From assembly GCA_964199315.1 (NCBI GenBank), contig OZ116709.1, forward strand, positions 2,294,001-2,358,000: DNA of 64,000 nt, read 5' to 3'. The notes under the pieces are model-generated. The model saw only the letters and a program-made list of their open reading frames with translations, was not told where the DNA came from and did no database searches. Position 1 is the first letter of the stretch, and each line of letters starts with the position of its first letter. Below are positions 3,869 through 62,297 of this stretch, piece by piece. Origin of the DNA: Orbicella franksi (taxonomy: Eukaryota). Made by a program: the position numbers and the translations under genes.

Positions 3869-6800
3869 ATGTCCAGGCTTATTATCAGGAACCTTCCTAA
3901 CAGTATAAAAGAAGAAAGGATCCGTTCTATTTTTGCGGCTAAAGGAGAATTAACAGATGTTAAGTTGTGCCGCACAAAAGATGGAAAGTTCAGAAGATTT
4001 GGCTTCATTGGATACAAAACAGAAGATCAGGCGAAAGCTGCCTTACAGCATTTTAACAGTTCGTTTATTGATACCTCTAAGATAACCGTAGACTTTGCTA
4101 AAAGTCTTGGAGATGAGTCACTACCGCGGCCTTGGAGCAGGTATTCGGAGGGAAGTTCTGCGAACGACAGATTGAAAAAGAAAAAAGAAAGGAAAGCTGA
4201 GGACCTGAAAGATCGAGTTTCAAAACCTACAGAGGCGAAAGATCCAACTGAAACACATAGCATAAACAAACAGAAATCAAGTACTGTAAATGAGAAAAAC
4301 AAGAAAAAGCGGACAAAAGCTTTAGATGACCTAGAAAAGGATACTGAATTTCAGGAATTTTTAAGTGTACATAAACACCGTGGCTCAAAACAAACATGGA
4401 GTAATGATAATGTAGATAGTGGCCAGCCAGAACCAAAGGAAAGTCAGACAAGGCAAAGGAAACAGGAAATAGTCACAGCAAATAAGGTACCGGTATGTAC
4501 AGGACTGCTTGAAATGAAAAGCTATATATACCAGTTCTGCTATCCTAGTTCTGCAATGGGTATGCACAAAGTGCAAGTCAGTGAGTCATGTGACTGGCCC
4601 ATTCCAGTTAGCCTAAATAGCTGTCTAGTTAGCGTGAATAGCCCTCTGAGGAGAGGAAAGGATTGGTTATGAAACCCCTCTACTAACTATGCTCAAGTAA
4701 CCTAAATAACCCTCTAGTTAGTTTGATTTAGCTTAGATAGCTAGTGGCTAGCCATTTTGTTGAAGCCAGTAGGGACTTCTGGCTCAAATGGTTTGTTTAC
4801 AGGTTAGCTGATTGAGAAATAATGCTTTGGTTAGCTTTAATAATACTGGCTAAACTAAATAACCTTCTGGTTAGTCTAAATAGCAGTCTGGCTATCCTAA
4901 GTTAGCTAAGTCAGCTTACATGTTAGTCTAATAATTTATGGGGGTCAGGGATCACAGATCACATGGCTCACTGGCTTGCTCTTTGTACACACACTCCGAT
5001 CCTGTGATGGACTAGCATTAGGAGAGAATACAGTGCAGTACTAGCCAAAATTATTGAAACAGGAAGTACTTTCAACTGAACTGGAATGTTCAGAATGGCA
5101 ATTAAAAGTTAGGTTACTTTTGGCTGGTATTATACCCTTACATTATCAATCAATCTCAATCAATCCTTCTTTATTTGTACTCACTCGGTGTTCAATGAAA
5201 TACATTGCAGTTGTATGTCTCGGAGACCATTGACACATTTAACGTCCTCTGATCTATTGCATTGGAACAGATTTGTACCTTTTGTAAATGCATACCTAGT
5301 TAACTGAACTAAATTGGACACTAGGAATTAGGAAGGCTTTTGGCAGTTTTAAATATTGATAAGAAAGGTGCAGGTCACAGTAAAATAATACTTACTGGTA
5401 GAAAGGCCTCTTGGAGTGAGTTTATAGTACCATTTCATAGGTCAGCATTGTGGTGCCTGTTGGAAAATATTTGTAAACTCATGACATATGTTACAGGGAT
5501 CCATATTAGCAGTCATCCAGTTTCAGAGACAACTAAAAAATTGAAAGGATGACCAAAACAATGCGAAAACTTGTCTGCTGGACAAGTTTAGTTTGACTCA
5601 TTTCAGTTTGAAAGCATTTCTTATATTTTTTATGAGTCCTGTGCATTCTGACCTCTTGTCATTCATTTGGAACTTTCAGAAAGAGAGAGAGTAAAATTTT
5701 GCCATGGCAAGTATGTCATCTGGCCTACTTGCCAAGCTGATGACTTTGAGAAAAAACCACTATGGATCCCTAATGTTAGGAATTCTTACCAGTGTTGTTA
5801 ATAATTTTTTAAGCCATGTTGATCTGTTGGGTTTTCCCTTCTCAGTAAAGACTCTGTTAATGGAATATTCATTTCAAGGTTAAGATCTGTGTTGTTTAAT
5901 TCTTTAATTCACTTCTGTTTCTTCCTTGTTAATTTTATTAGTCATCCAAGAGCCCATTAAAATATGATGACTCTGATGACAGTGGTAATGAAGATGAAGT
6001 TTATGATGCATCAGGTACACTTTAATCATCCACAAGAAAATGCAGTGATGGAAAGACCATTTATATGATAAGGACTATCGATATTGATTCAGGATGCTGA
6101 CTCACTTGAAGATCCGCATCAGAAGTTTTAAAAATGTTTAATGTTTAAAAATATGCCACTCATAAAATTCTTACAAAAGTACATCTGGGACCGCTGTAGC
6201 ACATTTTCCGTATCTGTTTTGATGATGTCATTTCCCACTTTTTCACAGTTGTTTGTGCAAACAGCCAGTTTGTCTACGTTATGAAATTAAAAAATATGTG
6301 TTGGCTTTAACATGTTAAAAACAATTTTTTAACTCACTTACTGCCCTCATATGTAAAATATTGTTTTTACTGCCTTCCACCATTTTATGAAAATCGATCA
6401 GATTTTTCGGAACAACTTAGAAACCCATGAAAGTGGATTTTGGGGAGTTAAAATCCAAAACGTTTCCTAGGGGAGCATTGTCTTAGACCCATCTCAGAAA
6501 TAAGTCACCATTTACCCTAGATTCGCCCCTAATCATAGACCTATCGCTGCCGTGTACTAACCTCTTATATAGTTTACATGAAACCTACAGTGTTCCTTTA
6601 ACCAAATATTGGGCACAAATGTCACTTCTTAAATGAAAATAAAAATTTGAAAGATTTGAATATTACAAAACTTGGCTGGCTCTTTTTACTTCCACTTTCG
6701 CTTTGCTTTGTCTTAAAGGCTTGTGGAGAAAGTGTTTTATTTTTTTGCTGGCAGTCAATGCACCAGTAGACAAGAACAAGTGGAACCCGTGGAGCACAAG

Positions 6801-9800
6801 TTTAATTTGTCATACCTGAATACAGTTGAACCTGTACTATTGGACATCTCTCAATAGCAGCCCCTGGGTTAGTTGTTGTCTGCTGCAGTGAGAGTCAACT
6901 GTAGACAACTTATTATACAGCCCTAGTTTCAATTTCCAGTTGTAGTATGCATTCCCTACAACACCTTTACAAGTGATTCTCATTACTGTACTAATATATA
7001 GAATTTTGTTGCAGGAGCCACAGAAGCATGGACTGAAGATACAAAAAATGGTGAGGAAATTGATGAGGAAGAGACCAAAATAGCCAAGGATTCCAAATTG
7101 TCAGATATGGATTATTTAAAATCAAAGGTTGTTTCAAGCAAACAGAAGACTGTAAAGACCAAGAAAAGTAAAGGATCCCAAAATAATAAAATTGATGATT
7201 CAGAAAATGAAGAGGAGAGGAATAGAGAAAGTTTGGATGATGAACCTATGGATACTAGTGCAAGAGAAAGTGACCAGGACAGTGGTGATAGTGATGATAA
7301 TGATGAGGACGACATTGAGGAGGGTTATGATAATGGAGACGATGCTGATGAAGATGATGATAGTGATAATAACACAGACGACAGTCCCAAAGAATCTTCT
7401 GTATTTGGAACAATTAAAATGAGGGGATTGCCTTTCAAGGCAAAGGAACAACACATCAAAGACTTCTTTGCACCTCTGAGAATAGTAGATATTAGAATAA
7501 TAAAAAATGCCAAGGGAAAGCCAGCTGGCTGTGCATTTGTTGATTTTGGAAATGAGAAAGATATTAAGGAGGCACTGAAGAGAGATAGAGATTGTATTGA
7601 GGGTCGATATATTGAGCTGTTCAGAGACAAAGGAGAACAATCACTAAATCAGGAGATTGACAAAGACAAACCCTGGATGAAGAAACTTGCTGCACAAGGA
7701 GGTGAAGAAGAGTTTGAAAGCATTGCAGAGGTAAGGGAAAATGTAGTGTCAGGCATGTGGTGCGTGCAACAGCTACATCCAGGATAAACTTGATTTCTGC
7801 CACTCTTTCCGGTCTGGCTGCGTTCCTCCGTAGTGAGTGCAGGCTAATGTCCTGAAACAGTGGCTGGTAATTGACCCTAGATCCAGCAAGGTACAGAAAT
7901 GGCTACAGCTTCATAGGCCTTTGCATGCATTGTAGCCTGTAATGCTGGATAATGATCCCTGCCTAAAATGCGAAATTGCAGTACTTAAATCATTAAACAA
8001 TACATTTCTGCCCTGACACTGCCCCAGTGCTTTTATTTGTGACAATAATAGTAATAGTAATAATATTATTATAATACTACTTTACAGGGAGTGGTTGCCC
8101 CTTCTCCCAAGCCAGGGTCTGGTCTACACAGCAGGGCTGCAATTAAAAAGAGCATCCTTATTAAGACCAAACAATGGAGGAGGGAGGGAGGTGCAGTGGC
8201 CTCATGGTTAGTGCACTTGTCTCCGGATCAAGTGGTCCGGGTTGGAACCCTGGCTAGGGTCATTGCATTGTTTTCTTGGGCAAGACACTTTACTCTCACA
8301 GTGCCTCTCTCCACCCAGGTGTATAAATGGGTACCGGCGAACTTAATGCTGGGAGGTAACCTTGCGATGAACTAGCATCCCATCTAGGGGGAAGTGAAAT
8401 ACTCTTAGTTGCTTCATGCCACAAGAAATGGGATAAGCTCCGGCCTGATGGGCTACTCGGCTTGTATGTAGACTTAACCTTAGGGCAAAACAAGTACATG
8501 TAAATTACCAGTATTACCTAAAATAATATTTGAGTCTTTGTTTAAAACACGATGTAGTCTGGTCGACTCTTTCTTCGTAACTTGGCCTATGCATGCTCAG
8601 AGGAAGACTTGCAAAACCTGTTTGACAAGTTTGGTCCCCTGACTGAGACATACCTGCCGTTGGACAAGACAACTAACAGGCCCATTGGAATAGGATTTGT
8701 CACTTTTGTCATGCCTGAACATGCAGTGAAAGCTTTTAATGAGCTGGATGGGAAAATATTTCAAGGAAGACTGCTCCACATTTTACCATCAAAGGCAAAG
8801 GAGACTAAGGATGAAGACACAGGTTTGTAGTGGAATTGTTGTTGTTTTTTCTTTTCAAAAAACCTTTCATGTAGTGTTCTTTTCAGAAGTATTAGTTGGG
8901 TCAAAATATTTAAGATGATCTTTAAAAATTCAAGCTACTAATGTCTACAATCTTTTCAGTTAACACTGCAAACAAAATTAACAATAATCTAACTACCTAT
9001 AGATGGAACAAATCTAGCAACAAATGACCCATTACTCTTTACATGACCCTTTCAGCTGTGTTTGGAGCGCTTTTGTTGTATGTGTGAGGACTAACAACTT
9101 GTAGATAAAGCCGTACCTTCTACCTAAATGTGTCGTGTGCCCTATCTGTGATTGCAGGTGATCTGTGAATGCTTATTGCAAATAACAAAGTCTTCTTGCC
9201 TATACAGATACAGTGACGTCTTTCAAGTCAAAACGTGACGCCAAGAAGAAAAGTCTCAGCAGCCACGATCATAACTGGAACACACTGTTTCTGGGAATGA
9301 ACTCTGTGGCTGATGTCATGGCTGATCAGTATAACACCACTAAAGGCAGCATTTTAGATGACGCCTCATCAAGAAGTCTGGCTGTACGCATGGCTCTCGG
9401 AGAAACACAAGTTGTTACAGAAACAAGGAAGTTTCTTGTGTCTGAAGGAGTTAAGCTTGATGTTTTTGGGCAGGTGTGTTATGCATATAACTCGCTTAGC
9501 TTGTTACTTGTTCTTTTAACTGTCAAATCAAGTATTAAGTATTCTTGATGTCAGGTGTGAAATTACACTAAGTAAACGTAGTGAGTTTAGTTTACAACAT
9601 TTTACATAAGGAATTATTGATATCATGAACAAACTAATTGTGACTTCCTTATCTTAGCCGTCAGCTAAGAGGAGTAAAACTGTCATACTTGTGAAAAACC
9701 TTCCCTTTAACACACCATGTGAGGAGCTCAGGAATATCTTTGCACCATTTGGAAAAGTTGCCAGGCTTGTGCTGCCTCCTTCAGGAATCACGGCTCTTGT

Positions 9801-11782
9801 GGAGTTCTTTGAACCAAGTCAAGCAAAGAAAGCTTTCCAAAAGTTGGCATATAGCAAGGTAAATTTTGAAATATTTGCTTAAGATTAAATATGTTACAAT
9901 TCCCGGAGAGTCTTAACCAGTAGAAAAGCATGGGAAGCACTTCGTTGAGAGCAATTGAATGCAAGGACATCTGGAGTCGTTCTAACATTTTGCACAGATT
10001 GCTGAAACACACTGATACTGCTCGACATCCTACTGAAACACTTTTGTTGATCTTTGAAAATACTGTGGACAAGACTGAAAGTGTTCTAGAGAATTGGAGA
10101 TTGAAGATTTCTGACGGGGCTGAAGCAAACATTGCATATCTCACTCACTTGAGGAAAAGCGCTTTGACTAACCAGTTGGTAAACATTGCTTTGTATTTAC
10201 AGTTTAAACACGTCCCTCTGTACTTAGAGTGGGCTCCTCTTGGAGTATTTTCTGGGAAACCTGAAGAGAAACTTGCAGAAGAAACATCAGAAACGACAAA
10301 GGAGAATAAGGTATACAATGTTACAGCATTTGCGTGGGTCTGAACCTCTATCATGCAATGTATGCTACCAATCAGTATTGATCTATAATACAACAGGCGG
10401 AACAGGCTGTTTTTCTTCCAAATTGGTAGTGAAATATAACACTCTCTTGTTTTAAAAGTCCTGGCACGCAAGAAGAATTCTTAAAGAGGAGTAATTACTA
10501 CTAGAAAGACAAACAAGATTATATGAGAAATTGCTACTACAGCTACTTTAATTTCTGGCTGTAACTACTACAAACACCTCTTTGAAGGAATTTTGGTCGT
10601 TTATAAATAAAGCTATCAACTCAACTCACTCAACTGTCATGGCGAGGGGGCGGGGAAGGGGGGGCAGGGGTGGCTCAGTTGTTGAAAACGAAATGTCACT
10701 TAAAATTTTGACCAAGTAGTCAGAAATTTGTTTGATGCTAAGAAGTGGGTTGTTGCCTTTCCAAGCGACTTTCGAGGTTTGTTTCTGTTCAACGTTCAGC
10801 CTTACGTTTGTATATAGGTGGTCCTTTCGCTTTATATAAAGGGTTTACCTCGACGCGGCCATTGCCCGTAAGAGGCTGGAAAAAGGGATTATGACTGATT
10901 ACTCAAAAAAGGACAAGGGTGATTTCGACTGGTTACGATTGAGAAGTATTTACGAACGTCGAATTTGAAAACACTCAAGACAGTTACCAAATACAAAATG
11001 TGTTTTTGCTCGCTATCTTTTACATATAATTGGAGATAAGTACCTGAATGTTTACATTGTGATTTTGTTTTGTTTCTTTAGGGCAAGGAAACTCCTGGAG
11101 ATAAAGAATCTGATGTTCAAGACGATGAAGGTGGTGATTCAGAAAATACTGAAGGCACGAGTGTCTTTGTAAAGAACTTGAATTTCGATACAACAGAAGA
11201 TAGCCTGAAAGAGGTAAACATGTTGACAATGTGTATTCATTGAATGTTATCAAGAGAACAACAAGGTAAGTACCTTGATCTTCTCTTGATGTTGCAAGTT
11301 ATGTTATATACTCCTGCGTTGGTATCTTCTGGTACAGATAAAGCCACTTTAGAAGCGCTCAATAAACCCATTGAATATTATTTCAAGTCGTACATAGTTG
11401 ACGTTCGGCATAGAGGCCATAGATTGGCGTCCATAGCTGGTGGGATTATGCCCGCGAGTGCTTCGTTACAGCCGCGGAGCCTGTAACGAAAGTGGCGAGG
11501 TTGCCTGGAGACCTGTGGTCACAATGGCCAATTCCCTCCAGGAGACATCTTGGAGTGGATGTTTTGATAAATACAACTACCATGATTCTCTGCAGGCGCG
11601 TCTCATAAAGGCAATTAACCATTCCCTCGCGGCTTCGCCCTTAGCATCCGCGCCTCCGTACTTGGGCGGGAAATCCCGCCAGCTAAACAGGCTAGCTAAG
11701 GCTTTATGACCGATTATTCCCTCAGGGCGCCGTTAGCCAATCGGAATGGCCATTTTTCCGACGCCTACCTCAAACGCTTGCC

Positions 11783-11837
<55 letters not shown>

Positions 11838-22639: not shown

Positions 22640-25600
22640 TCACCAAACCTCGGCGGAAGGAGGTATTGTGTTTGGTGGCCTCCCGGCTGCCGTGTCATAG
22701 GTTAGTCCGCCATTCTGGCTCTGCCCAACAACACAGTGGCTAATTTGTAATCCCGAGCTGTTATCGTTAACGGAATTCACAGCCATGATTCCTTGGTTGT
22801 TAAATCCCGTATTTTGAAGCATTTGAGAATTGTCCATAGCAGTGTTCACTTCGCTCGGCAAACCAGCATCAGTCTTCATGTAAAAGTCATCAAAAGCCGT
22901 CGCGGGGAAGTGTGAATTTTGTGGAGCTAAACGTGTGAAATAAGTAGATAAAAACAGTGAGAAAAAAACGGCTTATGCAATAAAGCCTAGTTTTCCAGCA
23001 CGTCAACGCCTAATCTTTAGATTAAAATGTTGGACTGTCTCGCAAGCCCTCGGTGCTTTTACGAATTATATTTTATAAACAGAGTCATTGTGGTTTCAAA
23101 GAGATAGTGACAAACACAGTAAGCCCATAAGAATGATGTGATGCCATTAGACGGAAAGAAAAGGCATTTTATCGGATCACCTACAATATTGTACCTTCTT
23201 TAATGTAAGAGCTACTTTAATATTTGCAGAGATGTTTCGAATCATCGCGAATCGGCACTTAGCACACCCCTGCAGAAAATCTAGAACTAAATATATTCAG
23301 ATCTTATAAATACAAACAGAGATAGCAAGTGACTTTTGCCGGCCTAAAGGCAAGCTTTACATCGTAACGCAACTATTTAATGTTCTTAGTTACACCTATG
23401 TATTGGCCACACAATGTGAAATAATGTAACTCTATATGCCACACCGATAAGTAACTCACGAAACACAGCTCATAGAAACATCGTCTACTCTTGATGTAAA
23501 TTACTCTCCCTTGAATTTAACGCCCTTTAAATTTTCCAGTTTTAAACTGATGAAACGTTTCAGTAAGGTAATTTTAAAAATCCCCCTACGATTAAAATAT
23601 TGAGCTCTTTAAGCTTAGGTAAGCTTTGCCGTTTTTGTAATACGTTACGATTTGAGACAAAAATTTTCGTTTTCATTTTATTATTATTATTTTTTAAAAA
23701 ATTTAATAGCCTGGTCTTCCCTTAGGTCAAACTGAAAGAAACAAACTTCATCTCTCTGCCGTCTAAACTACTGTATTTTAAGCAAAAGATTTTAATTTGT
23801 AAAGGCATTTGTCCAAAATCAAGAGAAACCTATGAAAGATCCGGTGAAGCAAAACGAATTAAAATTGTCTCCCAAAGGTCTAGTTTGATTGGGACCACGG
23901 GGAATATTTCACTGCTAGCAGTTTTTGACTTCGAAAAGCTAAACGCCAAACCTGTTGAATTATTAAAGAATAGAAGGTTTTAAACAGTAGGCAGTTTGTT
24001 TTTTGAAGTAGCACGAAATCTGTATGCAATTTATCGCCCATAGCAAAAATCACGAAATGTAAAAGATCCATTTCCTTATTCAAATACAGCAGTAAGTCTT
24101 GCGAAAGTTTTCTGATTTAACCGAGTTGGCTTAGACGATATATCTCGAGGAAGTAAGGACGAATGAATTTCTCCCCGGTAAATCCCTTATCACTAAACAA
24201 AACTCGTGATAAGTAGCATTTCCATTTGCCATTTCCTGCCAGCTCGTATTAGATGTCTTTCGATATTGCATGCCTTACTCTGTGGCCGTCTATTTTTAGC
24301 TGAACACTTTTTGTCAAAATTCGACTGTTTCTGCACGAAAACTGTTTCCACAGCTGTCTGTTCTCATAAATGTGCTAAAAATGTAAGGCAGGCAAAATGG
24401 TTGAATAATGCCTTTATAACACAATAGGAGGTTGATACGCGGCCCTCGAATTATTCAAATTCGTGATTTTTAGTATCTTCTGGTAACTTGCCAGTTTTGA
24501 TAGAGCAGAAAAATTTCGTTGTTCATACCCACTTAGCGGTGGGTTCTCACCGGAGTACTCTGTAGCTATGTCGTCAGGAAGTTTTGGGACTGTCTCACGG
24601 GTGTGTTTAAACGTTCTTTCTAAATTTCCCCCATCTCCAAGGGCAACTGAGCAAGATTTTACAGCTTTATTCAAGACGGAACATGTCATATGAGCTGTTG
24701 TGACTATCAAGTTGAAGAGCTTTTGAGTGCTCTCCAAATACACTCTCAAGTACTATCCATTAGAAATTGACTGCTATATTCTCTCATGGTGCAGAGTGCT
24801 CTTGCGCGGTTTCCAAGAGGCGGTTGACCTCGCGCTGTAAAGCAGGTCTTACTGAAAGAGTTTTTCTCGAATAAATTTGAATGCGGAAGAAAAGTAAACA
24901 GACTGTGTTCGTAGCCTACCTGTGTAATTTATATGTGATGTGTTGATTGACTGTTCGGCGGGGTTAGTAGATCCGTTTCCAAGGTTTTCAGCCTTTGCTC
25001 TCCTTGACCGTCTTCCTGATCTCACAGCGCGGCTTGCACTCGGCTGGGAGACTCCTTGCTGCTTCAGCCTTCTCTCTTTCGATCTTCGGTTTTGAAACCA
25101 TACTTGAATCACTCGCATGTTTAAGCCGGTTTCTTGCGCTAATTTTTCGCGGATATTTCTGGAAGGTTTAGGAGTAGCTGCAAAGGTAGCCTTGAGGGCC
25201 TCTAACTGCTTAGCTTTTATGGTAGTCCGAGGTCCGCGGCGTTTCGTTCCGAGTGCTACGTCTAAATCCTCGTCTAAACCATAGCTTAGATCTTTCTCTT
25301 CGGAATCAGAGTCTGTAGAAGGATGTAACACACACACACATAGGCAAGAATTAGATCTATTAACATTAAATAACCGTTTGTGTATTAATAAACAAACCAA
25401 TTCCCCTTCCACTCACCAGAATGCTTGGATGGCAAGCGTGATTGGTAGTAGTCCTCTTTACAAACGAATTTGCTTTCTCCGACGTAATACAATTCATCAC
25501 CGGTCAAAATTTGCCGGTTACAGCTGGAACAATTGAAACATTTGACGTGAAACACCAAGTGTTTGGCTCTTCGGACCATGTCATTCGGCGAGATCCCTAA

Positions 25601-25940
25601 GCAGCAACCAGCACACTTTGTTCCATAGCGCCTGAAAATTTTAAAATAAGAAAGCAACTTAGATTGTGTAATGCACTGCCATCGAATTCACTTAGTCTGG
25701 AGAAAGCTTGGCAGTTATTTAGATAAGCAGGCGTTTTTTTTGATTCGGCCGATTGTGCGTTACGTACCTGTAAAAGTCATTCTTGCAAAACAGCTTTCCC
25801 TCTCGAGAAAAACATTTGTTGGTGAGTGCGCATTTGCAGTCGTAGCAATGGACGCATTTGACGTGCCAAACGCGGTCCAGAACTTTCAACAGGAATTTAT
25901 CCGAGATGGGGAGCTCGCATCCCGCGCACTGTTGAACCAT
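22640..25940 (-). CDS. LHX1/5: LIM-homeobox transcription factor Lhx1/5 (Lim1), about 355 aa
   Basis: Exons 25940-25768 (LIM1 [36 protein letters not shown]), 25631-25417 (LIM2), 25312-24920 (homeodomain [34 protein letters not shown]), 22926-22640 (ends AEVW*, matching the terminal W of the family). 1068 nt in frame. Confidence 0.93.
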
Positions 25941-26344
25941 GTTACAAATCTGGCCCTTCATCCAGCCGATCGTACGCGCTCTTCAGTTCAGTTTCCTCGT
26001 CCGCTTGCGACTGTATGTACGTTTATGTAAAGTACAGTGCTTTGCGCGTGAAATTTATGCGAGTAACTCTTCAACGTGCCCAGTGGGAGGTACCTCGCAC
26101 TATGCCAGCTGCTGAACGGGACGGTAAAATGCGATTCAAGAGGAGGGATTGTGGATTTTCTAAAAACCGACGCTCGAGTTTATTCCGCGGTCAAAATTTG
26201 CATACAGTTTGGCGCACGGAATGCAAAGTGAAAGGATGAAAGCGCGCGGCATAGAAAGCACTTAGTCGGCCATGCTATACGTCAATTAGCTTGTTGAAAG
26301 ACAACACATTTACGCGCTCCTCTTTTGATATAATTTGACTCCGC

Positions 26345-26402
26345 CTGTCATAAGGAATTGACAGTTCAAATTTGACAGCACTCTGACAAAAGCCAATGAC
26401 AT
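26345..26402. promoter_or_regulatory. Cluster of five TGACA (TALE-homeodomain-type) cores plus a CCAAT box upstream of Lhx1/5
   Basis: CTGTCA 26345, TGACAG 26359, TGACAG 26373, TGACAA 26384, TGACAT 26397, about 400-460 bp upstream of the ATG. Confidence 0.45.
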
Positions 26403-29400
26403 TGAGAGCCTTTGTGGGCGCGAGCCAAACTTTCAACACGCCATTGTTTGACCGGGATTATGTAAACTCGAAAAAATCGCGCAATTTGAACATCTTTTGT
26501 CTAGCTATTGTTCGCTTTGACTGCCATCATAAGGCTAAGAGCGCCTGTTTGTCTCGCAAGGCTTCAACCACGAATGCGTCTTCACCGAACTGCGGAACCC
26601 GCGATCGATGAAAAGGAAAGACCGGCATCGCGTAAAAGCCATCTCGCTTGTGTTGTGCGAATATTGGGTTACTGATATTTCCGACTGGTGAGAACATTTT
26701 TACGCAAAAAGTCGATCCATATCAGTAAGCGGGGCGGCTGGAAGGCTCGCCGATCGGAACGGAAAAGCTTTTGTGCCGAGATTTACTTTATCTCGTGATA
26801 AACCTTATGTTGTTGTCACTAAAACATGTCAAAACACTCCCATTTGCAAGTGTTTATTTACATACAGATTTTCAAAACAATGGACAACAGTTAGCGCATT
26901 TTAATGAACCGGGGGTATTCTCTCTGGCTTCGCGGCGTATTCGCGAGCGCCGAACCTGAACGTTTAGTCTTGATCGCAGCAAAACTGACGCAAAGCAAAT
27001 TTCCTTGAAACTGCCCATCTGCTGTCAGGGGCCTCTTCAAGTGAGAAAATGGCCAACCACAGATTTTCATCAGTAGAATCTGGTAGCATTGGCTCCCGGG
27101 AGTCGCGCGAAAACCCGCATGGCACGGCGCTTTTACACAAAGTGTCGGATTCAGATTTTGGGCAAAAGACCCTTTCCGCAGCAATTTAATTTTTCAAAGT
27201 GAATTATTCAACAATACCGACGGCGTTTTCATTTCATGTCTGATATTTTGATGACAAACCATGATTTTTAATAAAAGCGCGTCTGGAGCCCTTCCTTCGC
27301 AAAAAGACGCGAAATGCTAAAATTTTGTTAACAAGCTTTAAGATAATCGCTCGATTTCTGCATCTGGGACACAGTTTTCGCCAGCTTAAATTCGTACGTC
27401 GATTAAATGAACAGCAAAACTACTATCAATAACATCGCTATCGTTGTGAACACATTTTTAAGAAACGAGACCAAGTTTCCGTACAATATCCTCCTTGTTT
27501 TCGTGGCAGTTTGTATGTGGCGTTAAACCTCCCTGTCGCTGGTTCATGCAAATGCTAATTGGTCAAAACACCTGCTACTACACATCACCTGCCTTTTCTG
27601 ATATAACCGCTGTCAGGGGAAAATGCGGGCGATGTAGTTTATCGCACATTACAGTCTGGACTCTGGAGACGGTTCTTCAACGCACACTTCAACGAACAGT
27701 CTATTTTAGTTTTTTTTTTCTTTCTTTTTTAAAAAAAAAACTCTCAGTGATGTTTCCTGTGTAAATTTTCTGACCTTTTGTTTTAAAGGGGTTACGTCAC
27801 ACTTTGTGCATCTTGAAAAGTTTAGCCGAAAATTTTCAAGTTCACGGTTTGTAATCCGTGTTAATTCTCTCCATTCTTAACCGTCCTTGTTCTTTTATGG
27901 TTTATTATTATGCCTTCTAATTCCAGTTGGTGTTTTTCTATCTTAGTAAACTACTATTTTCAGGTACGTGGTCAAAATGAGCTCACTTTGCTGGATCAAG
28001 GTCACCATCACATAAAACATTCACTTAAGAACACTTTTATACAAGATCAATTACATAAAACCCTTTGTAACTTTGATCCCTAGATTAGCCTTAATCGGCT
28101 TTCCAACGACTGGGTCCAAGCCAACACTGTTTAATCAAATCAGCTCCATTCTCTGAGGGGAGGACACTGATACTTTGGGAACTGATGCCAGGGCCAGGAG
28201 CCCATGATATATAGTCTAAGGCTCCTGGTAGGGCTGATACTCAAGAAAGGGACCCGGAGGTGCCTCAGTGTTTCTTAGAGTTCTAGAGGTAGCTTTTACA
28301 TGAATTCTGGTCTCTCCAGCAACAAGTCAACTCAGTGTCCGTAATAATCGGCGAACAGGAGCGTATGACCCATGGGTCATGGACTCCTGTCGGCAAAATG
28401 ATCGATATCTGAATACCGCAAAAAAATTCGGCAAATACCGCAGTATTGCAAAAAAAAAAAAAAAAATCGCCAAATACTGCAACACTATCAGTGTCATACC
28501 GCAACTACCACCCTGTATGTTAAGTTTGGAGTATTAATAACACGGAAATAACAATTAGGAATTTGTTAAGTCAGGTAATATTTGATTTAGACAAAGTAAA
28601 AAAAATAAGTAACATCCATTGACGTGTCGGCTAATAATTAACAAAAAATAACTTACCATTTTAAAGTCCGATTGGAAACTGGAAAAGGCTCGGAAAACGT
28701 TGGAAGACTTGGAGGATAATTTTTAATACCGTCCAAAATGCTACAAAAAAAGGCATCCCGCAGGTTTGGAGAATTCTGCAATACCGCAAGAAAAATTGTC
28801 CAAAAACGAAATGTCCTGTCAGTCTTTAAGGGCAAAACGTAACTAAAAGTGCCCGCACAAAGCTTAAGTACAAATTTCTAAAAGTTTTGAGATGTTTTCT
28901 TACTTCTTATATATAGCTTCCCATGAGAAGATAATACCGTTATAGTATGTCGGCGCCTCTTGAAAAGTTTGGGCGACATTTTTCAATTTCGCTGTTCATA
29001 ACCATCTTTATCCTTCAAAAACCGCTTGGGTCCTGCCTCAGTAAACTATATCTTGAGATTTAATCCCTGAGGTTAATTTGAAATTAATTTTCTGTATCAC
29101 AGAAAGTGACTTTATACTGTTAACCTTTACCCTGCGTTGATGGATTACAAAGCACGAGGCTGCGTACGAGGCCCAGCAGTCTACACTAACTTGCAAGAGT
29201 TTCCTGTCACTCGATTTAGTACTTATTATCAATAGACTCAGCCTGTTCCATTTCCGAAACTTACCAGCCGAGACGAGATAACGATAACACTGGCGTTGTT
29301 AGACATTCCATTAGGTTGACGCGAGATGGGAGTCATGAGCCGGAGGTTATGACACTCGATATGATGACGAAGAAAGCGATAGTAAATGTAGTTTAGATTA

Positions 29401-33092: not shown

Positions 33093-36000
33093 TTACAACT
33101 CTATGCTGTCATATGGCACGCTGAGCTTTATGTTATAGTTGTAACCGCTTGTATCGTCATAATTGGAGGAGCAAATATCCGGAATGCCCTCAGTCGCATT
33201 ATTCACTGAGAAATCAAACATACGTATGATTCCTCGATGTCTTCGGTGAAGAATCAAATCGTCTGCATACCAAAGATTCTCGCGCGGGCTTTTATCTACT
33301 GGAATGTTCGCCGTAATCATCCGGGAGCCTTGTAATTTGCAGAGCCTTACTGGATGCCGCGCATGCGTCATCCACAAAGCTGACGTCATCCGCTGATCCC
33401 AGACTAGTAATGTTCCGTCCTCTGCACCGCTGACCACTTTCCAGTCGTCCATTTGTACGGCGGTGACTGCTCGTTTGTGTCCCAAGTGAAATGAAAGAGC
33501 TATCTTTTCAGTGCGCAGGTCAAAAACCCGCACCCTACAGTCATAGCTGCCTGTCACGAGGCGATGCGGAGGACAACTGGCAAGATCAAGACACGTGATC
33601 TCGCGGTAGTGGGCTCCTAATATGGAAATCATTTTTGTGGTTTCCAGGCAGTATAAACGCACCTAATGGTTGGAAAAGAAAAGATAAAGAAATCTTTTGA
33701 TCTATTAAAAGGGAAACCTTATTAGAGTTAAGAGCTTTGTTTCAACTACAGTGGTCAAGAACTACACAGTGGGAACAAAAGAAATACATAAATTAAATTT
33801 AGAAGAGACCCACAAAGAAGACACGTTAACTGAAGGGTTTTTACACAAACAAGTCACATCATCGCAAAATCTTAAAATACCTTATGATACATTTTGCTTA
33901 AATAGGGTGGCACAAAACAATCTTGCGACTGATGCGAAATGGAATTCAGAAATGCTGGTTAATGTTGTTAAATAATGAGCCTTGTGAAGTGAATTTTCTT
34001 CCTTGGGTTTCTAAACTGAACTGTACTCCTTCGGAAAAAACAACTGCATATCTCTGGTCAATTATCTCCTTTGGCCATTAAATTACAAAATCAAAACGCA
34101 ATCGTCGCTAACGTACATTTCTCAAGCTTTGACGCTGGTCTCACCAGCACTCATTTTCATTGTGTGCTTGATTGGGTTGCCAACCTGATGTCTGCTCACA
34201 AATATTGCGCAGTGCTCATACGAAATAGAGAACCGTGCTTATTTTCAACTAATCAGTAATAAAACCCAGACCAATTTTCCACTTTCGGCACTTTTTTGTT
34301 TCGAATTCCGATTCGCTCAATGCGTAATCTGTTTTTTCAAAGCCACCAGAAAACTACTCTATGTTGTCAAATTGGTTGATTCTGTTTGTTTTGTTACTAC
34401 AATGTTGCGTTTTATTTTATATACATGTATTACTTTGTTTCCAAGTGTTCCATATCCATATGAGCCCACTCCAAGAGCAAGGCGGTCAGCAGTACAGTCC
34501 ATAGAGCTTAATTTTCCACCAATCACATGATCCAATGTTGATAGAAAACCTCTGCCAGGTGCCAAGACTGACACGGTATCTTGGGTTGCTATAGCAACAT
34601 GTTCAGTCGATGAACCAGAACTACTTTTTGGAATAAACATGGCCCGTCCAATCTGTAGATCAAGGAAGGTTTTATCAAAGGCTAAGGTTGTTCTAATACT
34701 TCAGGGATCATCAGAGGCTCAGCTAACTACAACCTTGGTAACAAGGGTTGGAAAAAATCATTCTATACACATTTTGCCCCTCCCCACCCCTGTGCAGTGT
34801 TGACAAAACACTTTCATCTGGCAGAAGTATGCATTTTACCATTTTCCAACATTGAAAGGGGGAATGGGGGTGTTGACACTTATTCTGTAGGTATTACGAT
34901 TATGATTTCATGTTTTTGGCATTTTCCAACACAATTTGTCCATGATTGTAGCTTACTAGCTTATTACTAGTAATGCTTATCACAACAAGTGATTAAGGGT
35001 AAGTGTATTATTTGCCTCCCCTACCTCCTGGATGAGATGGACAGGGCACAAAAATGGCTAGACATGGGCAGTGTGGGTCTGCAGTTCCTCCTACCATTCG
35101 ATTTTCAAAATAGCAGCCAGGCATGCACACTGACTGCCACATTACCATTTTACATCCCACTCTGTCGACCAATCAGTCATTTTTGCGCCCTGTCAATGAA
35201 ATGCCAGCCATTACAGATTTACACTCTGCAGCATTTTGTCAGCTTGTTCGTGTCAATACCCATAATACTCTTCAGCAGAGAGAAGCACTGTTAGAGTAAC
35301 ATATCCAGCCAAAAAAATACAATACAATGACTCTGGCCAAATTTGGTCAACCCAGACTTCTCAATTCAGATTCTGATGCTTTAAACATTCAGCAAGGTTG
35401 CCATACCTCTGACGTTAACAACAGCCAATCATTCAAGGCTGAGAATGTACTTATGTTGTTTGCAGGGTAACAACTAGTGACATAATCTAGTGTCCAGACT
35501 TCCCGTGATCATGTAGTCTCAAATACATCAGGGTCTGGGTGTGAGATTGGTGGAAAAACTTAACCTTGGGAAATATTTTGGCACAGTCAGATTACTTGCC
35601 TACCTTGTCCTCAAAATTCCTGGAATCAAGACATGACCACTGGTCATTGGAGTCACTCAACAGTACCTTGAGTTCATGATTTGACATGGCTGCAAATGTG
35701 GGTGGGCCAGTTGCTGCTAAAGAAACACTTTTTACAGACCCTTCACAACAACAGTGACACAGTGGGGATGACCCTAAGCTTGTGTGCCAAACATACACAT
35801 CGCCTGCAAGTATCACAATAATTCTAAGCTGCTAATATAGGCAATAACGCATGCAGAGAGAGTAATGTATGTGAAAGGCTAAGTGACTGTAGTAGCCCTT
35901 TATTTGCATTGGAAGCATGTGGTTATAGCATGACTAAAAATCAGTCTGTAAGCTGGTGGTTGGATATTTGTCTGGGTGTTCAGTGTCTTTCTACCTGAGG

Positions 36001-54359: not shown

Positions 54360-55236
54360 TTTCTCGACGCTTTGTTACTGAGTCTTCAGTCTCATTTTTA
54401 GGTCGCTTCGAACAAGCACAAATTCTCCATTCAACATCTCTGGAAGATTCCACTTAGGCCGCCATTTTGAAGTGATGTATTGTGGGAGAACTCACTCCAG
54501 TCCTTGCGCGACTCCTTGCGCGGAGTTCACGGACGTTATGGACGATAAAGATGCCGAATAAATCTCCCAGTTGATCTTTGTAATCGATCGCTTTACGTGT
54601 CTATGTCTGGCTTGCCCGGCTTGGCTTGCTCTCCACAGCCCCTATTACTCCAGCGGCATTATAACTTGTCTTCAGACCCACCTCTGATCGAGCAGATCAA
54701 CTGGAGACTTTTTTACTTCAAACCAGCATTGAATATGAAGTAAATGAAATCTTAGCCCATGAATCTGACCAATCAAATCAGCAGTTCTACAACATCATTC
54801 TTAGGGCTCTTTCTGACTGCTTTTTATCTGAAAAAACTGTCATTGCAAGAGTTTTCCAGACATCGAAGCTGGAAGATGAATGATACTGTTCACGCTAAGA
54901 TGTGAACGCCCTCGTCGAGTTCGTTACGTGTTTATCACTCCTTGTATAGAGATAGCCAACCAGACTGATCTCAAATGCCAAAGACATATGTATTGTACTG
55001 GCCACGCTAGATGCAGTTTCTGGCATGTTGCGACTCGATGAAACAGTTGATCATTGAAGTATCAGCTAAGTATTATTTTACAATCAAGCTATATTAGTTG
55101 GAATTCAAAGTTCGGAAGGAATCAGTATGTGAGATGACAGAATTCTGTGTAAATTCATGGCCGACTGAGAGTGGGTGCATTGTCAGCCAAGTTAACATGG
55201 GCTAGATTCAGGCAAATAGCTATTTCGATAGATCGA

Positions 55237-55634
55237 CAACTTCACTAAGATTTTGCTGGGCTCTTGCACAAGCTTCGCAAGGTATGAATGCTGTGTCATA
55301 TGTCTGTGTTGATGATTCCTGACAAGTCTTGGCATTAGCAACATCTTCAACAGCAAGAGTAAGATCTTGCGCAGGAGTTGAGCTTTCTAGGGATAATTCC
55401 TCTGATGGTGAAAGAATAAACTTGACGGAAGATCTATTTGCACTCTGACTTTGAACTTTCCCTTTAACAACAGATGATTTGCCTGATCTTTTATCCAAAG
55501 CTTGTTTGAAAAGTTTCACCTCATCTCGCAGCTCTGTAATAGTGTCCCCCATTTTGGACATTGTCTTGTTCTTGGTTTTACTATAAAGAAGACAAAATTA
55601 CCTGCTGCTTTACCATTTGTTTCTCAGGATTGAT
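55237..55634 (-). pseudogene. Duplicated partial CCDC157 exon (copy of 60091-60488)
   Basis: 14 substitutions over 398 bp, no indels. The copy includes intron flank; the original acceptor AG is mutated to AT. Confidence 0.92.
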
Positions 55635-59500: not shown

Positions 59501-62297
59501 AATAATGATTGATTAATTACACTGATATTAATCATAATTAATCATAATCTTGCATAATTGCATATTGCATAATTGTGAATTTAAACTCCCTAAACTTCAG
59601 TGATCAATTATTGAGTTGTTGACTTTACCAAGAGTTTTAACAGTCTCTTTATACTTCTTTTTCTTTTCTTCCAATTTAACTACCATGTCATGAAGCACAT
59701 CTTTTCCTTTCACAAGGTCATTGTTCATTTTTTCTGCATCAGATAACAGTTGATCTTTCTCTGCAACAACTTTGTTGAGCTGCTGTTTAAACTCTTCCTC
59801 CTTTTGCTGGACTTTACTGTGTTCATCTGACAGTTGCTTTTCTAAGTCTTTAATTTGCTTCTCAAGATTAGTGCAAGCCTGTTTTGATCTGCTAAGTTTC
59901 TCTTCTAGTGGATTAATCTGAGCATACAAGTTGTCTAAGTGATCATTTATTCTTCCAAGATCCTGGTTTTGTTCAGATGTCCACCTTGACACATCAGCAG
60001 CAGCCATAAGTGACTGCCGCAAGAGTTTCTTCTGCTTTGCTAATGAAGAAGGAAGGCCTTGAGATTCACAAACTTTAATGACCATACTACCAACTTCAAT
60101 AAGATTTTGCTGGGTTCTTGCACAAGCTTCGCAAGGTATGAATGCTGTGTCATATGTCTGTGTTGATGATTCCTGACAAGTCTTGGCATTAGCAACATCT
60201 TCAACAGCAAGAGTAAGATCTTGTGCAGGAGTTGAGCTTTCTAGGGATAATTCCTCTGATGGTGAAAGAATAAACTTGACAGAAGATCTATTTGCACTCT
60301 GACTTTGAACTTTCCCTTTAACGACGGATGATTTGCCTGATCTTTTATCCAAAGCTTGTTTAAAAAGTTTCACCTCATCTCGCAGCTCTGTAATAGTGCC
60401 CTCCATTTTGGACATTGTCTTGTTCTTGGTTTTACTCTAAAGAAGACACAATTACCTGCTGTTTTACCCTTTGTTTCTCAAGATTGATGAAAATCTTAGT
60501 ACAATATGGTATAAACTTATTATCAAGTCAACAAGAACAGGCAACAATAATAAATGAAATAATCAACAACTTGGAAACCATATTATGATAATGCAACACC
60601 AAACTCTTAGAGCTAACTTGATTTCTAAGCTCTGGATATCACTATCCAGTGGATAAATAACTATGATCTGTGCAGTGGATAGCATAAAATGTTTTGACAA
60701 AACAGTTGAACCCCTCTATTTTGAATCCTCAGGGGAAATGGAAAATAGTTCAAAAAAAGTGGAGGTTTGAAATAACTGATAGTAAATGGCTGAAGGGTAA
60801 ATCCACGAGAAATTATTTTGAGTTCAAAATAACGGGGAATTTGAAATAACCAAGTTCGAATTGCTGGGGTCCAACTATACATACCAGATAGCGATTAATC
60901 TGGCCCCAGTTGTTCGAAAAGTGGATAACGCTATCCAGTGGATAAGTGTTGGCAAAACAAACCAATCTATCCACTGGATAGCGATTTATCCAGTGGATGG
61001 CCTGGTGGATAGCGTTATCCACAACAAAATGGCACTACATGTAAGAGTCAATGTGGGATACAGAGTGTCTGTAAGGGTTAACCCTTATGGAAACTTAACC
61101 ACTGCCGAGTCAGTGATATCAATTATAGGCTAACCTGTTCTCTATTTGTGCTAACTGGAGCACTACATTTAGGCTAACCATAGAACCATTTTGTCATTTC
61201 ATCTTTTAACCATGCCTGCACCAGACGAATCAAAAATGTTTTGGATGAGAACTGTTACCAAAACAAAATGTACTGGGAGTAGATGATCTGTTTTTGAGGA
61301 ACTGGAATAAGAAATGCAAATTTAACAAAGAGAATGCCATTGCACCCTTTACCTCAAACTGAAGCTGCTGTGTTGTCTGTTGAGCATGAACCAATTTGCT
61401 CCAGAACTTTTTAGCCACCAATCCAACAGACATGGCAGAACCAAGAATTTTACCACTACCAGGCCTGCCATCGCACGTGGTCAGCAGCTGATCACTATAC
61501 TGAGCCATACCTTGAAGCAGTAGCACAAGCCTGATTCAAGAAATTTTAAAATTGTGTTTATTATGACTGCACAACAAATGGTATCTTCAGCTATCTGTGG
61601 GTGAACCTTGAACTTTTTTCTCCACACCAAGATTCCAAGCTCTTTAAAAGTTAATATCCTAACTCAAGGCAAAGTAACAAACTGAGGAATTTTATGTTGT
61701 CTAATAGGGATTCAAGTCTACCCCAGAACATTGAGTCCACCAATTTTCTCAAATTTGCCTCTAAAATACCTTCACCTGCCCGTCAGGCTAGGGTACGTGG
61801 AGGATAGAATCAGCTAGCCCAAATGCAAAATCCAATAGCTCTGTGCTACCAGACAAAACTTTCTTTGCTCTCTTGTTGTCATTTTGAGTTTTTGAAACAC
61901 TTATTTTCATCAGTTTTTTTCTGAATAATCAAATTATCAAAATCTGTAGCAATAAAAAAGAACCCATTTAACTGGTTTGTAAAAGTTCAAACCAGATAAA
62001 GATTTAAAACCACTACATGAGCATTTAAATACAACATGTTGATTGTATTTACCTGTCGATCAAAAGTTCAAAGAGAATGATGTGTGACAGTTTGCAGTGG
62101 TCGTCATCACTGGAATATGAATATCTTTCCAGTAGATCGTCAATATCAAGTTCACATGATATTTTATCCGGATATTTCCATGAAGGACTTCTGACAGGTC
62201 CCACTCTGGACAACAAATCCATTACTGTTGTTTGAACATCACTGATGTCCTGCCTTAAGCTGTCCAAACAAGCTTGACTTCCAAGAAGATGAGCCAT
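56566..62297 (-). CDS. CCDC157: Coiled-coil domain-containing protein 157, about 843 aa, with a C-terminal C2HC finger
   Basis: Exons 62297-62053 (MAHLLGSQACLDSLRQD..GPVRSPSWKYPD..ELLIDR), 61530-61353, 60436-59629, 59305-59115, 58463-58287, 58129-57779, 57558-57482, 57070-56566 (2532 nt, in frame). Confidence 0.9.
60702..60879. mobile_element. Degenerate Tigger-like MITE
   Basis: Ends acagttgaacccc / ggggtccaactat are imperfect inverted repeats. Confidence 0.5.

Follow-up and report, generated by a model that had tools for sequence, protein, structure and literature searches.

In a 64,000-nucleotide stretch of the Orbicella franksi genome (GenBank assembly GCA_964199315.1, contig OZ116709.1, positions 2,294,001 to 2,358,000 of the forward strand; hereafter the window), the gene for the RNA-binding protein RBM19 stands beside Lhx1/5, a LIM-homeodomain gene, and the same two genes are neighbors in many vertebrates. 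This raises the question of whether a housekeeping gene has been held beside a developmental transcription factor since the cnidarian-bilaterian split by enhancers lying in or near it, as the initial annotation of this DNA had proposed, or whether the adjacency came about in another way. We found that a shared, ancient control block of RBM19 and Lhx1/5 is not supported and that the descent of the adjacency is unproven. The explanation that we prefer, with a probability of roughly 0.55, is that there is no regulatory lock and that RBM19 and Lhx1/5 were juxtaposed independently inside a conserved linkage group.

RBM19 is encoded on the forward strand (3869-16934) and Lhx1/5 on the reverse strand (22640-25961). 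The two genes converge, and 5,705 bp separate their stop codons. Both gene models were confirmed, and with them the initial annotation's description of an adjacent, convergent pair with about 5.7 kb between stops. The genes are immediate neighbors only among protein-coding genes, because a nuclear RNase P RNA gene (17559-17866, reverse strand; Rfam RF00009) stands between them, ~250-300 bp past the RBM19 poly-A site. The RNase P RNA match covers model positions 1-301 of 301 at 139.7 bits, against a gathering score of 28 (E 3e-41), and the gene is expressed: a 301-nt RNA contig with a depth of ~5000 covers 17564-17864. It is also present in an older Orbicella faveolata scaffold (MZGG01000664.1), to which the window is ~99-100% identical in every reading frame, and was not found in the Acropora digitifera spacer. 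The same 27.3-Mb contig (called C12 here), of which the window is 2.294-2.358 Mb, has another copy with 82% identity 4.6 Mb from this one, at 6,938,274-6,938,572.

The convergent layout could in principle couple RBM19 and Lhx1/5 through overlapping or colliding transcription or through a shared 3' element. Past the RBM19 stop, poly-A RNA-seq depth is 35-43 at 17.0-17.2 kb and 10-15 at 17.2-17.4 kb, then zero, and read ends cluster at 17236 and 17266. This places the transcript end at ~17.24-17.33 kb and gives RBM19 a 3' untranslated region (3'UTR) at 16935-17330. The Lhx1/5 3'UTR is ~745 nt long (21894-22639, reverse strand) and was defined by an RNA contig at 21894-22928 and by poly-A reads from ~21.8 kb. 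The two transcript ends, at ~17.3 and ~21.9 kb, are ~4.6 kb apart with no overlap. In three libraries, poly-A depth was zero from 18.2 to 21.8 kb, with traces at 17.9-18.2 kb. Thus, the RBM19 and Lhx1/5 transcripts do not meet, and we consider coupling of this kind very improbable.

We measured conservation by blastn between Orbicella and Acropora digitifera, whose exons are ~77-86% identical at the nucleotide level. The initial annotation had pointed to the RBM19 introns and to 17-22.6 kb as places to look for conserved non-coding elements. Such blocks were found at 20.3-22.6 kb, but the introns and 17.0-20.3 kb held essentially none. Within RBM19, essentially the exons alone are conserved with Acropora and with a further coral contig (L010). 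In introns 4-14, 82 of 6,790 bp aligned with Acropora, mostly beside exons. The second coral, L010, aligned with 215 of 3,276 bp of RBM19 intron DNA, mostly in a repeat; in introns 1-3 it shares this repeat alone, and in introns 4-7 almost nothing. The match in question, in intron 3 (8196-8419), was rejected as a conserved element because it has four separate places in L010 and is hence a repeat; this short interspersed repeat recurs within the RBM19 introns of L010 at 14120-14266, 14887-15016, 16404-16447, and 18853-18922.

The spacer between the genes falls into two parts. On the RBM19 side (17.0-20.3 kb), 0 of 3,301 bp aligned with Acropora; the stretch at 17867-20300 is without conservation and, from 18.2 kb on, without poly-A reads. 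On the Lhx1/5 side (20.3-22.6 kb), 558 of 2,339 bp aligned, as did 460 of 2,233 bp in the Lhx1/5 introns and 938 of 1,652 non-coding bp in the promoter and upstream DNA (25,962-27,613). Non-coding DNA close to Lhx1/5 is therefore 21-57% aligned. Farther out, at 27.6-33.0 kb, the alignment again drops to 0 of 5,387 bp. Individual blocks beyond the Lhx1/5 poly-A site lie at 20301-20386 (88% identity), 20634-20660 (96%), 20992-21107 (77%), and 21212-21502 (77%). Two short ones lie in the 3'UTR (22094-22131 and 22320-22342), one lies in intron 3 (24174-24498, 75%), and two are in the promoter and upstream DNA (25962-26899, ~80%, and 27497-27613, ~70%). The blocks at 20.3-21.5 kb carry no poly-A reads. 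We rejected the idea that they are an unannotated coding exon, since all reading frames contain stops in both species and none of them is favored.

From these alignments we infer that the conserved blocks around Lhx1/5 are regulatory. The Lhx1/5 control region would then span ~20.3-27.6 kb, from ~1.6 kb of promoter and upstream DNA through intron 3 and the 3'UTR to 1.6 kb past the poly-A site, and would stop ~3 kb short of the RBM19 transcript end, with the RNase P RNA gene in the gap. RBM19 and Lhx1/5 would be functionally unrelated genes whose 3' ends face each other, each run from its own compact surroundings. For coral Lhx1/5, the interval at 20.3-27.6 kb is a candidate control region, compact and conserved, that is suitable for reporters.

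These results bear directly on the idea of an ancient regulatory block in which RBM19 is a bystander locked beside Lhx1/5 by Lhx1/5 enhancers in or next to it. In such blocks, the introns of bystander genes are described as long and as holding many conserved elements (Irimia et al. 2012, PMC3514665). The juxtaposition itself fits the idea, in that two very distant lineages both have a developmental transcription factor adjoining a housekeeping gene unrelated to it, and there are conserved non-coding blocks in the spacer at 20.3-21.5 kb. However, none of these blocks is farther than 2.4 kb from the Lhx1/5 stop, and all are 3 kb or more away from the end of the RBM19 transcript. Apart from a repeat, nothing is conserved in the RBM19 introns or at 17.0-20.3 kb. 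The 14 RBM19 introns total 10.1 kb and the longest is 1.8 kb, unlike those of the bystanders described by Irimia et al. (2012, PMC3514665). In addition, a gene for a pol III-type RNA has settled in the spacer in Orbicella only. Judged from sequence, no testable hallmark of a regulatory block is present beyond the bare juxtaposition, and whichever way the adjacency originated, the alignments give no sign of Lhx1/5 enhancers within RBM19. We therefore think such a block unlikely.

The comparison with other animals adds to this. Our neighbor tests reached only 6.6-10 kb beyond Lhx1/5, and the negatives are partial. In Acropora digitifera, which belongs to the other stony-coral clade, an FBXW8-like gene and Lhx1/5 are followed, 4.4 kb off, by a convergent multi-RRM gene of 952 amino acids, which tblastn identified as RBM19. 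In the octocoral Dendronephthya there is no RBM19 signal beside Lhx1/5. Its convergent downstream neighbor (L003 20358-26400) has HAD, APH, and acyl-CoA dehydrogenase domains, which is the architecture of ACAD10; an uninterrupted open reading frame of 680 amino acids without known family lies within this gene span (L003 23943-25985, reverse strand). In Branchiostoma belcheri there is no RBM19 similarity within 10 kb of Lhx1/5, and a different gene begins 400 bp downstream; a Branchiostoma Lhx5-like gene (P0266) ranges over more than 100 kb. Lhx1 of Nematostella is NV2.15429 (chr4:1,291,443-1,297,457; Zimmermann et al. 2023 supplement, PMC10719294). It ends at L001:14221, and neither RBM19 nor FBXW8 was present in 6.6 kb downstream or 9.4 kb upstream of it. 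Long tandem repeats, open in several phases, lie upstream of the Nematostella gene (L001 3421-4474 and 6658-7832), and the sole gene called there, of 158 amino acids, is probably a tandem-repeat reading frame. We found no RBM19 and no called gene in the 10-kb Lhx1/5 flanks of Saccostrea (oyster) and S. purpuratus (sea urchin), and no RBM19 within 10 kb in two ENA contigs with Lhx1/5 exons; these, like the Nematostella result, are weak negatives.

In vertebrates, the order rbm19-lhx5-sdsl occurs in tetrapods, coelacanth, elephant shark, and partly in gar, and it is broken in teleosts, where lhx5 enhancers are kept without the rbm19-lhx5 linkage (PMC4492605). The initial annotation's statement that human LHX5 and RBM19, at 12q24.13, are neighbors thus agrees with the arrangement documented for non-teleost jawed vertebrates (PMC4492605). 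Taken together, the adjacency was seen in two stony-coral clades, represented by Orbicella and Acropora, and in non-teleost jawed vertebrates. It was not seen in the octocoral or, within 10 kb, in B. belcheri, nor in five further loci, where the reach was short. The initial annotation had named absence of the adjacency from most intermediate lineages as what would speak against a conserved block, and the comparison goes part of the way to that outcome. For a regulatory lock, a linkage broken in octocoral, amphioxus (within 10 kb), and teleosts is a further difficulty; the teleosts retained their lhx5 enhancers (PMC4492605). Given short RBM19 introns, an RBM19 side without conserved non-coding DNA, and a pair unseen in other invertebrate groups within the reach of our tests, the block inferred in the initial annotation is not supported. 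The vertebrate linkage is already published, while the coral adjacency is visible in public annotation and is discussed in no paper that we found: a literature search returned none linking RBM19 and Lhx outside vertebrates. RBM19, LHX1, and LHX5 are absent from the supplements of Robert 2022 and Gaiti 2017, files that may not use gene names.

In stony corals, the pair is part of a larger arrangement. The collinear order is OLA1-like, ZDP phosphatase, RBM19, Lhx1/5, and FBXW8. Acropora digitifera shares the position of FBXW8 relative to Lhx1/5, and L010 carries the OLA1-like gene, the ZDP phosphatase, and RBM19 in the same order as in the window, with the PNK3P-domain (ZDP-type DNA 3'-phosphatase) gene directly upstream of RBM19 on the opposite strand. 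Because the order matches in Acropora and L010, the RBM19-Lhx1/5 pair belongs to a collinear block of at least five genes. This suggests that the adjacency persists in stony corals because the whole neighborhood is collinear, and not because RBM19 and Lhx1/5 are a special pair.

The relation to vertebrates extends to the chromosome scale. The only match of the octocoral ACAD10-like exon in the Orbicella genome is at C12:3,517,471-3,517,563, 1.2 Mb from Lhx1/5. The same contig has a Tbx2/3-like gene at 8.666 Mb (best PDB match TBX3) and a Tbx4/5-like gene at 8.693 Mb (best match TBX5). These two form a tandem pair 27 kb apart (8.666-8.696 Mb), mirroring the vertebrate TBX3-TBX5 linkage. Two Tbx1-like genes, divergent and ~23 kb apart, also lie on C12 at 7.256-7.283 Mb. 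Human ACAD10 is at 12q24.12 and FBXW8 at 12q24.22. Human RBM19, TBX5, and TBX3 are contiguous at 12q24.21 (PMC5031565), in a region of separate chromatin domains (PMC9928424), and LHX5 flanks RBM19 on the side away from TBX5 (PMC4492605). The ancient chromosomal relation to human 12q24 that had been suggested for this locus was borne out by the presence of FBXW8 and of the ACAD10-like, Tbx2/3-like, and Tbx4/5-like genes on the same coral contig. Thus, the contig shows conserved linkage with the human 12q24 neighborhood, with the order scrambled. At least six genes of that neighborhood are kept on this one contig, as is expected from known macrosynteny and unsurprising to specialists. ACAD10, LHX5, RBM19, TBX5, TBX3, and FBXW8 would form one ancient linkage group, which occupies ~5 Mb in human and ~6.4 Mb in coral with a different order, and common membership in this group would explain the likeness to the vertebrate RBM19-LHX5 pair. 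Conserved linkage with scrambled order raises the chance that two genes are brought side by side again by coincidence, and it is also compatible with a relic adjacency.

Such a relic would be an adjacency that was inherited unbroken from the cnidarian-bilaterian ancestor as a neutral or weakly constrained arrangement, not enforced by enhancers in RBM19. It would have been kept in stony corals and jawed vertebrates and lost in octocorals, amphioxus, teleosts, and perhaps sea anemones, and one gene would have been inverted. Consistent with this, Orbicella, Acropora, and non-teleost jawed vertebrates (PMC4492605) share the adjacency of these two protein-coding genes, and the further 12q24 members on the coral contig mark a region of common origin. 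Anthozoan genomes also rearrange slowly, and five genes are collinear between the coral clades. On the other hand, RBM19 does not adjoin Lhx1/5 in the octocoral, nor does it lie within 10 kb of Lhx1/5 in B. belcheri, and Nematostella Lhx1 has neither FBXW8 within 9.4 kb nor RBM19 within 6.6 kb, where the coral gaps are just 4.4-7 kb. The orientation also differs from that of human LHX5 and RBM19, which are in tandem. Finally, RBM19, LHX5, and LHX1 do not appear in the two synteny-related supplements, in which gene names may not be used. Unbroken descent of this kind is possible but doubtful. A stronger form of it, in which an ancestral eumetazoan pair was kept for more than 600 million years since Lhx1/5 control partly needs the RBM19 side, in a 12q24-like neighborhood with FBXW8, ACAD10, and Tbx2/3-Tbx4/5, has little probability in our judgment. 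If true, such a deep block would bring Lhx1/5 into the small set of cnidarian-to-vertebrate blocks, and enhancers of an organiser and neural patterning gene would become testable.

Truly inherited gene pairs are usually kept in sea anemones, octocorals, and amphioxus, usually with their orientation. As far as seen, RBM19-Lhx1/5 shows none of this retention. We infer how the adjacency arose from this pattern and lean toward independent re-juxtaposition inside the linkage group over unbroken descent. Several points weigh against this choice. Chance adjacency of a given pair in two lineages is unlikely, at about 2/N for a linkage group of a few hundred genes, and most pairs shared by cnidarians and vertebrates are thought to be inherited rather than coincidental. 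With a reach of 6.6-10 kb, five of the seven non-coral loci are uninformative rather than negative, and developmental genes often sit in larger deserts than that. Enhancers can also act without alignable conservation, so the absence of conserved blocks in RBM19 does not prove the absence of enhancers. If independent re-juxtaposition is correct, RBM19-Lhx1/5 would illustrate a shared adjacency for which conserved chromosome-scale linkage is the better explanation.

The comparison depends on the identity of both genes. The RBM19 coding region begins with an ATG at 3869, ends with a stop at 16934, and encodes 999 amino acids in 15 exons whose borders are all GT-AG. Exons 1-5 are at 3869-4492, 5942-6014, 7015-7730, 8558-8822, and 9208-9473; exons 6-10 at 9658-9858, 10203-10310, 11082-11213, 11993-12059, and 12575-12654; and exons 11-15 at 14455-14510, 15010-15123, 15936-16041, 16637-16760, and 16867-16934. 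Proteins of the RBM19/Mrd1 family are ~800-1000 amino acids long with six RRMs in fixed order, and the model has this arrangement. Pfam RRM_1 matched the exons for RRM1, 2, 3, 4, and 6, and RRM5, which is divided among exons 8-10, was detected by alignment. The nearest relatives align along the whole length of the protein. Exon 1 matches proteins named RNA-binding protein 19 in Desmophyllum and walrus, and the RRM2 exon matches human RBM19 RRM2 (PDB 2dgw, E 1.4e-21). The model is collinear with fish RBM19, with 53% identity over 287 amino acids in sturgeon. It is also collinear with fungal multi-RRM proteins that we take to be Mrd1 orthologues, with 43-44% identity over ~515 amino acids plus the N-terminus. 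Protein searches at increasing query length, with queries containing acidic and basic low-complexity stretches, returned coral fragments, fish, and fungi only. The RRM2 exon retrieved nothing from the Protein Atlas but generic nucleolin-like RRM clusters, under 0.9, which was uninformative for identity, and a PDB search with an RBM19-specific linker exon gave no match. The family has a nucleolar role in 18S pre-rRNA processing, and by family membership coral RBM19 is predicted to share it.

Intron 10 of RBM19 contains two tRNA-Glu(TTC) genes in opposite orientation, predicted by Rfam and ARAGORN (13468-13541, reverse strand, and 14187-14261, forward strand). Approximately 5 kb of the window (~11240-16260) is missing from the older O. 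faveolata scaffold MZGG01000664.1 at scaffold position ~19630. The missing stretch carries RBM19 exons 9-13 and both tRNA genes. RBM19 is called with only 624 residues on that scaffold, compared with 999 here and 952 in Acropora, probably because of this gap.

The Lhx1/5 coding region has four exons, at 25961/25940-25768, 25631-25417, 25312-24920, and 22926-22640 on the reverse strand, and encodes 362 or 355 amino acids, depending on whether translation starts at the upstream in-frame ATG at 25961 or at 25940. The shorter model is identical to residues 8-362 of an NCBI entry, LIM/homeobox protein Lhx1-like from Orbicella faveolata, and RNA reads span the splice of exons 3 and 4, confirming this junction. 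Two N-terminal LIM domains (Pfam LIM, E 6e-15 and 9e-15) are followed by a homeodomain (E 5e-21). The best full-length relatives are named Lhx1/5 (Priapulus, Phoronopsis), Lhx1, Lhx5, Lim1, and lin-11. By its named nearest relatives, the gene is assigned at the level of sequence to the Lhx1/5 class and not to Lhx3/4, Lmx, Islet, Lhx2/9, or Lhx6/8. The protein ends in AEVW and has the conserved VW tail of the class; many of its matches end in AVW, EVW, or LVW, and Nematostella Lhx1 ends in DDVW.

Upstream of Lhx1/5, the FBXW8 orthologue occupies 33096-40004 on the reverse strand. Its C-terminal and F-box exons match human FBXW8 (PDB 7z8b_F) at E 5.9e-42 and 7.2e-27, respectively, and FBXW7 and FBXW1A are far behind. 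One of its introns holds a reverse-transcriptase-like open reading frame of 258 amino acids (37242-38018). A gene for a DHHC-type palmitoyltransferase follows at ~40100-45700 on the forward strand, with the DHHC motif in the exon at 43483-43707. Near-identical N-terminal coiled-coil exons lie 4 kb apart on the reverse strand at 55220-55561 and 59597-60415. Their first ~110 amino acids are almost the same, which points to a coiled-coil gene whose 5' part was duplicated locally in tandem.

The coral locus can be compared with four known systems. The vertebrate rbm19-lhx5-sdsl arrangement likewise has the two orthologous protein-coding genes as direct neighbors, but there the described lhx5 conserved non-coding sequences are upstream of lhx5 (PMC4492605), whereas the coral genes face each other 3' to 3' across 5.7 kb. 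The other neighbor of Lhx1/5 is FBXW8 in corals and SDSL in vertebrates, and teleosts have already lost the vertebrate linkage (PMC4492605). Genomic regulatory blocks such as those of Islet and Otx with their bystanders also place a developmental transcription factor beside a housekeeping gene (Irimia et al. 2012, PMC3514665). Unlike those bystanders, coral RBM19 has neither long introns nor conserved non-coding elements, and the RBM19-Lhx1/5 linkage was not seen across the intermediate lineages examined within 6.6-10 kb. In the human RBM19-TBX5-TBX3 region, RBM19 sits among developmental transcription-factor genes (PMC5031565). The coral has a Tbx2/3-Tbx4/5 pair as well, but it lies ~6.3 Mb from RBM19, whereas human TBX5-TBX3 adjoin it (PMC5031565). 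As in the linkage groups shared by cnidarians and bilaterians (Zimmermann et al. 2023, PMC10719294), six coral genes on one contig have human counterparts at 12q24.12-q24.22, with different order and spacing. Macrosynteny of this kind does not predict exact adjacency such as RBM19 and Lhx1/5 show in stony corals and jawed vertebrates.

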